DNA of 64,000 bases, taken from positions 77,810,001-77,874,000 of the forward strand of contig NC_083234.1 in NCBI RefSeq assembly GCF_032191835.1, given 5' to 3'. Source of the stretch: Heteronotia binoei (Eukaryota). Within the stretch, counting starts at the first letter, position 1. Each line of letters starts with the position of its first letter. Positions 1,921-2,110 of this stretch are shown piece after piece. The notes under the pieces are model-generated. The model was not told the origin of the DNA and searched no databases. It saw nothing but the letters and a program-made list of their open reading frames with translations. The position numbers were made by a program, and so were the translations under genes.

Positions 1921-2110
1921 AGGTTCAGAAACTGTCCAGCCTGGTGCTCCCGTCGGAGGTGATCATTGCCCAAAGCTCCATCCCTGGGGAAGGCCTGGCA
2001 TCTTCTCCAAAACCTGGATCAAAGCCGGCACAGAGATGGGACCCTTCACAGGCCGGATCATCTCCCCGGAACACGTGGATCTTTGCAAGAACAACAATCT
2101 CATGTGGGAG
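1921..2110 (+). CDS. PRDM12: PRDM12 coding exon 2 (start of PR/SET domain); apparent 1-bp deletion at ~1997
   Basis: Acceptor ctcctgcAG|, donor |GTGAGG. Reads (E)[25 protein letters not shown], then shifts frame to [38 protein letters not shown], matching vertebrate PRDM12. Length is 190 nt, where phases of the flanking exons require 191. Confidence 0.97.

Follow-up and report, generated by a model that had tools for sequence, protein, structure and literature searches.

PRDM12 is required for the development of nociceptors, and its biallelic loss leads to congenital insensitivity to pain in humans (PMC8048104, PMC8502974, PMC10067717), a disease whose inheritance is autosomal recessive (PMC10067717). 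The human loss-of-function alleles that underlie this condition (HSAN-VIII) are close counterparts of the lesion analysed here, in that they concern the same gene and the same domain, and that an allele truncated in the PR domain would be null (PMC10067717, PMC8048104). They differ from our case, which comes from the reference assembly of a lizard and is known from the assembled sequence alone.

Other described systems also come close. Errors in long-read assemblies have been described to produce frameshifts that mimic pseudogenes (PMC12007338), and the likeness to our locus is a one-base error of run length that gives an otherwise intact, strongly conserved gene an apparent premature stop. 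The difference is that the run is short here, three G being expected. Unitary pseudogenes share with it a lesion that breaks the frame of a single-copy orthologue at its ancestral place, in this case beside EXOSC2. Finally, tandem acceptors of the NAGNAG type resemble it in having two adjoining AGs at an intron–exon border (here cAG|AG).

The window, by which we mean the whole stretch of DNA that was analysed, spans 64,000 nucleotides of the Heteronotia binoei genome (RefSeq assembly GCF_032191835.1, contig NC_083234.1, positions 77,810,001 to 77,874,000 of the forward strand). It holds PRDM12 on the plus strand from exon 2 to the stop codon (~30 kb), exon 1 lying outside. Searching it by tblastn with the PRDM12 proteins of Gekko japonicus and Eublepharis macularius, we found that the encoded protein is nearest to those of geckos. 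The marks of a PRDM12 orthologue that lie in visible sequence are present: a PRDM-type PR/SET domain in exons 2 to 4, near-identity to relatives, and EXOSC2 as a neighbour. The Pfam profile PF21549 runs colinearly over exon 2 (profile positions 13-49), exon 3 (52-99, E 5.8e-16) and exon 4 (102-123, where the profile ends), and the best match of exon 2 among solved structures is human PRDM12 (3EP0). On this sequence evidence, the locus would most likely be an ordinary functional gecko PRDM12 orthologue. A structural model did not contribute to the analysis: the AlphaFold2 prediction for Gekko japonicus PRDM12, built on a 22-sequence alignment, had a mean pLDDT of 38.6, which was too poor, and it was discarded.

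Concerning the exons downstream of exon 2, exon 3 (11026-11178) is intact and identical to both Gekko japonicus and Eublepharis macularius in 50 of its 51 residues, as seen by tblastn. Exon 4 (27682-27793), located in the same way, is likewise intact, with a canonical acceptor and donor. The coding part of exon 5 (31875-32257), placed by tblastn and by spacing, ends with the stop codon at 32255-32257 and is interrupted by a run of N (31954-32165, 212 bases) that covers exactly the region of the three zinc-finger codons. This run keeps the frame, as 2 + 212 + 2 = 216 nt lie between the flanking codons, and the flanks themselves match gecko PRDM12, both in the 13 residues that precede it and in the C-terminal AHHIPTMVL that follows it up to the stop. 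It looks like deliberate masking rather than a gap in the assembly. Exons 3 and 4 and the unmasked ends of exon 5 are open, and the acceptors and donors of exons 2 to 5 are all canonical. The original prediction that all other exons are intact therefore holds for exons 3 and 4 and for as much of exon 5 as is visible, and reaches beyond the visible sequence for exon 1, which is outside the window, and for the masked zinc fingers. Introns 2 (~8.9 kb) and 3 (~16.5 kb) are both rich in repeat-like open stretches, and intron 3 contains a second run of N (136 bases, 16452-16587).

Exon 2 (1921-2110, plus strand), which encodes the start of the PR/SET domain, is delimited by its own sequence and splice sites, by the match to 3EP0, by tblastn with gecko PRDM12 and by PF21549. 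Its borders are the acceptor cag|AG (1920/1921) and the donor GAG|gtgagg (2110/2111). As assembled, it measures 190 nt. Its 63 codons, together with the two bases that it contributes to a split Glu codon, require 191 nt. The shortfall lies in the segment 1983-2003, which reads CCT GGG GAA GGC CTG GCA TCT, where the protein needs Gly-Leu-Gly-Ile, with CTG GGC ATC following GAA GGC. The G run at 1997-1998 has two G instead of the expected three. The missing base belongs between CTG, which encodes Leu, and GGC, which encodes Gly, inside the invariant motif GEGL-GIFSK.

Translation of the two frames supports this placement. The frame from 1923 yields 25 residues that match chain residues 17-41 of the solved human PR domain (3EP0, E 4.5e-08), followed by unrelated residues; the frame from 1922 yields 25 unrelated residues, followed from 1997 by GIFSKTW...NNNLMWE, which matches residues 42-79 of the same chain (E 2.9e-21). 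Since the two matches abut, with no residue lost or doubled, exactly one base is absent between CTG and GGC. Both the one-base shortfall and the local codon reading had been claimed before the present analysis, and both are borne out by the sequence of the window.

If the exon is read as assembled, the first stop in the shifted frame is the TGA at 11093-11095 in exon 3, at the position originally predicted. Nonsense-mediated decay follows the established rule of 50-55 nt. As this stop sits 83 nt upstream of the exon 3 donor, with two more junctions downstream, the transcript would be expected to undergo such decay, in line with the earlier claim that the lesion is NMD-sensitive.

The site of the break is under very strong constraint. 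Once the missing base is bridged, the 63 residues of exon 2 are all identical to those of PRDM12 in Gekko japonicus, Gekko kuhli and Eublepharis macularius, and over the visible PR domain (~138 residues) there are at most two differences from other geckos, which are conservative. Of the homologues from the first search, 118 span GEGLGIFSK, and every one has it unaltered. When both searches are taken together, the 26 residues that precede GIFSK are retained by 253 of 259 sequences, in which essentially three positions vary; the remaining six are short gene-caller fragments whose reading continues through flanking or intronic sequence. Across 22 aligned species, which range from sharks to mammals, only one of the 26 residues varies and 25 are invariant. 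The intron-encoded flanks of the window's exon 2 occur in none of the homologues from the first protein search, so that a second, independent copy of exon 2 from the same species seems to be absent from the protein collection. The squamate protein clusters likewise contained no member from this species; as several other geckos are missing from them too, this carries no information.

Three gene-caller fragments (P0072, P0082 and P0105) carry ~30-40 unrelated residues between ...SSVPG and EGLGIFSK, as would be seen if exon 2 were divided by a short additional intron in some lineages. This interruption is near the gecko shortfall, at a different position.

An old or decaying PRDM12 pseudogene can be excluded, since exon 2 is identical to its gecko counterparts over 63 of 63 residues, the visible exons are open, the splice sites are canonical and EXOSC2 looks intact; the lesion is single, and there is no excess of amino-acid change. 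In the visible exons 2 to 5 we found neither the several lesions nor the relaxed constraint that would mark a unitary pseudogene, and it is in these respects that the locus departs from that class. If neutral sites are assumed to change at ~1e-9 per site per year, the at most two changes in ~138 residues argue against an inactivation older than ~20 million years. The original prediction had judged a fixed pseudogene less likely than an error of the assembly or a very recent allele, and the single lesion in a gene whose visible exons are otherwise well preserved supports that judgement.

A younger fixation can also be envisaged, with the missing G fixed or homozygous in the lineage and PRDM12 either on its way to being lost or still used through the AG at 1921-1922, at the cost of 25 changed residues. 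The splice sites of exon 2 and the downstream exons are still intact, and the arithmetic is favourable: splicing into this AG drops two more bases, which together with the deleted one amounts to the loss of a single codon, so that the frame is restored at GIFSK and no stop is met on the way. Against a fixed state stand the want of any second lesion and the near-identity of the PR domain to that of other geckos, and we found no paper reporting the loss of PRDM12 in any lineage. We regard this scenario as improbable. Its consequences would be large, as the animal would either be without normal PRDM12, a factor for pain-sensing neurons in mice and humans, or depend on a weak GAG acceptor. A vertebrate that truly did without PRDM12, or used one with an altered PR domain, would offer a remarkable experiment of nature; the evidence points the other way.

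The splicing route deserves separate consideration. The two AGs at the border (1919-1922, plus strand; cAG followed immediately by an exonic AG, the proposed alternative acceptor, with the peptide read from 1922) do not form a NAGNAG tandem, as the spacing from the first (1919-1920) to the second (1921-1922) is two bases, and a G precedes the second. In NAGNAG-type acceptors the spacing is 3 nt, and choice of the second site adds or removes one codon, whereas the 2-nt spacing here means that the second AG shifts the frame. The second site is moreover a disfavoured GAG, the least used type of acceptor, and comes immediately after a strong CAG that has a long pyrimidine tract. The arrangement is set by a conserved codon, the second AG belonging to the split Glu of ...SFSG|EVQK..., common to homologues from fish to mammals. 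Being part of that codon, the AG at 1921-1922 is ancestral and did not arise as a rescue. The open alternative frame of 25 codons is also unsurprising, and would be expected by chance in 35-39% of cases, whether the estimate uses base composition or 20,000 random synonymous recodings of the peptide. Its use would replace 25 near-invariant residues, the GEGL motif among them; the same 253 of 259 homologues retain these residues with hardly any change. The claim that the AG 2 nt downstream restores the frame with about 25 altered residues is thus correct as arithmetic, but on these sequence features the rescue is unlikely to be biologically meaningful.

Skipping of exon 2 was also considered as a rescue and rejected, neither 190 nor 191 nt being divisible by three.

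Restoration of the frame during expression, by ribosomal frameshifting or by transcriptional slippage at the G run, would be a highly improbable explanation. The break does fall in a short G run, and nothing else speaks for it. A −1 shift would be needed, and the zero-frame codons CCT GGG GAA GGC CTG GCA contain no X XXY YYZ slippery heptamer around CTG GCA, the hallmark sought for a programmed −1 frameshift. A run of two to four bases is far too short for polymerase slippage, all homologues carry the plain in-frame sequence, and we know of no vertebrate PRDM12 that needs recoding.

There remain a technical cause and a young allele. One-base indels in homopolymer runs are a typical residual error of long-read assemblies, and at this locus a lone G run is cleanly one base short, in a conserved gene that is otherwise intact. 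We consider that a run of three G was probably called as two in the assembly consensus, the animal's own gene probably being normal, and assign to such a consensus error a probability of roughly 0.58. From a base that is absent in the assembly, a frame that breaks at that point and a visible gene that is otherwise undamaged, we infer that a technical cause is the most likely one, and that the missing G is most likely not a real feature of the gene. If high-accuracy reads went into the assembly, three G make a short run for an error of this kind, which would speak against an artefact.

A less likely but serious alternative is that the deletion is a real, young loss-of-function allele of the sequenced animal, most likely heterozygous, on the haplotype that the assembler happened to pick. 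Translation of its transcript would end in exon 3 and the transcript would be degraded, leaving the second allele as the source of PRDM12. A clean lesion in an otherwise perfect gene is just how a new allele should look, and the recessive inheritance of human PRDM12 deficiency suggests that one null copy would be tolerable (PMC10067717). By a rough estimate, a heterozygous null has prior odds only somewhat lower than an error would have in a very accurate assembly. Real mutations, too, favour short homopolymer runs. Moreover, clonal triploid lineages belong to the Heteronotia binoei complex, and these would shelter null alleles.

As a consensus error and a new mutation would both appear as one clean missing base in a perfect gene, sequence alone cannot separate them, and the weighting between the two is a matter of priors. 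These favour the consensus error: errors of assembly are blind to the essentiality of a gene, whereas a real null of a gene conserved from shark to mammal should be rare, and rare in any one individual. A human missense variant at the Ile just after the break was looked for and not found in the part of the literature that was covered, and none is used in this weighting.

The meaning of the missing base differs accordingly. A homozygous deletion, if real, would be a remarkable finding. A real heterozygous one would rank as a rare null allele of the ordinary kind, of modest interest as a naturally occurring null of a pain gene in a wild lizard, and an error would mean nothing. For annotation, the model best suited to the locus, pending reads, is an intact PRDM12 in which an error of one base is suspected, and not a pseudogene.

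Downstream of PRDM12 and on the same strand lies EXOSC2, which encodes the exosome component RRP4, an order that we take to be that of the human genome as well. We identified five exon-sized stretches between 50410 and 58408, conserved and all of them open, and the one that was compared with human RRP4 (58088-58408) matches it with an E of 2.8e-34; the gene looks intact. A GC-rich stretch at ~44300-45350 may hold its promoter and first exon. Between the two genes, on the minus strand, two further open stretches (36626-37612 and 38699-39337, of 329 and 213 residues) resemble, by the look of their sequence, reverse-transcriptase and endonuclease parts of LINE-type retrotransposons.
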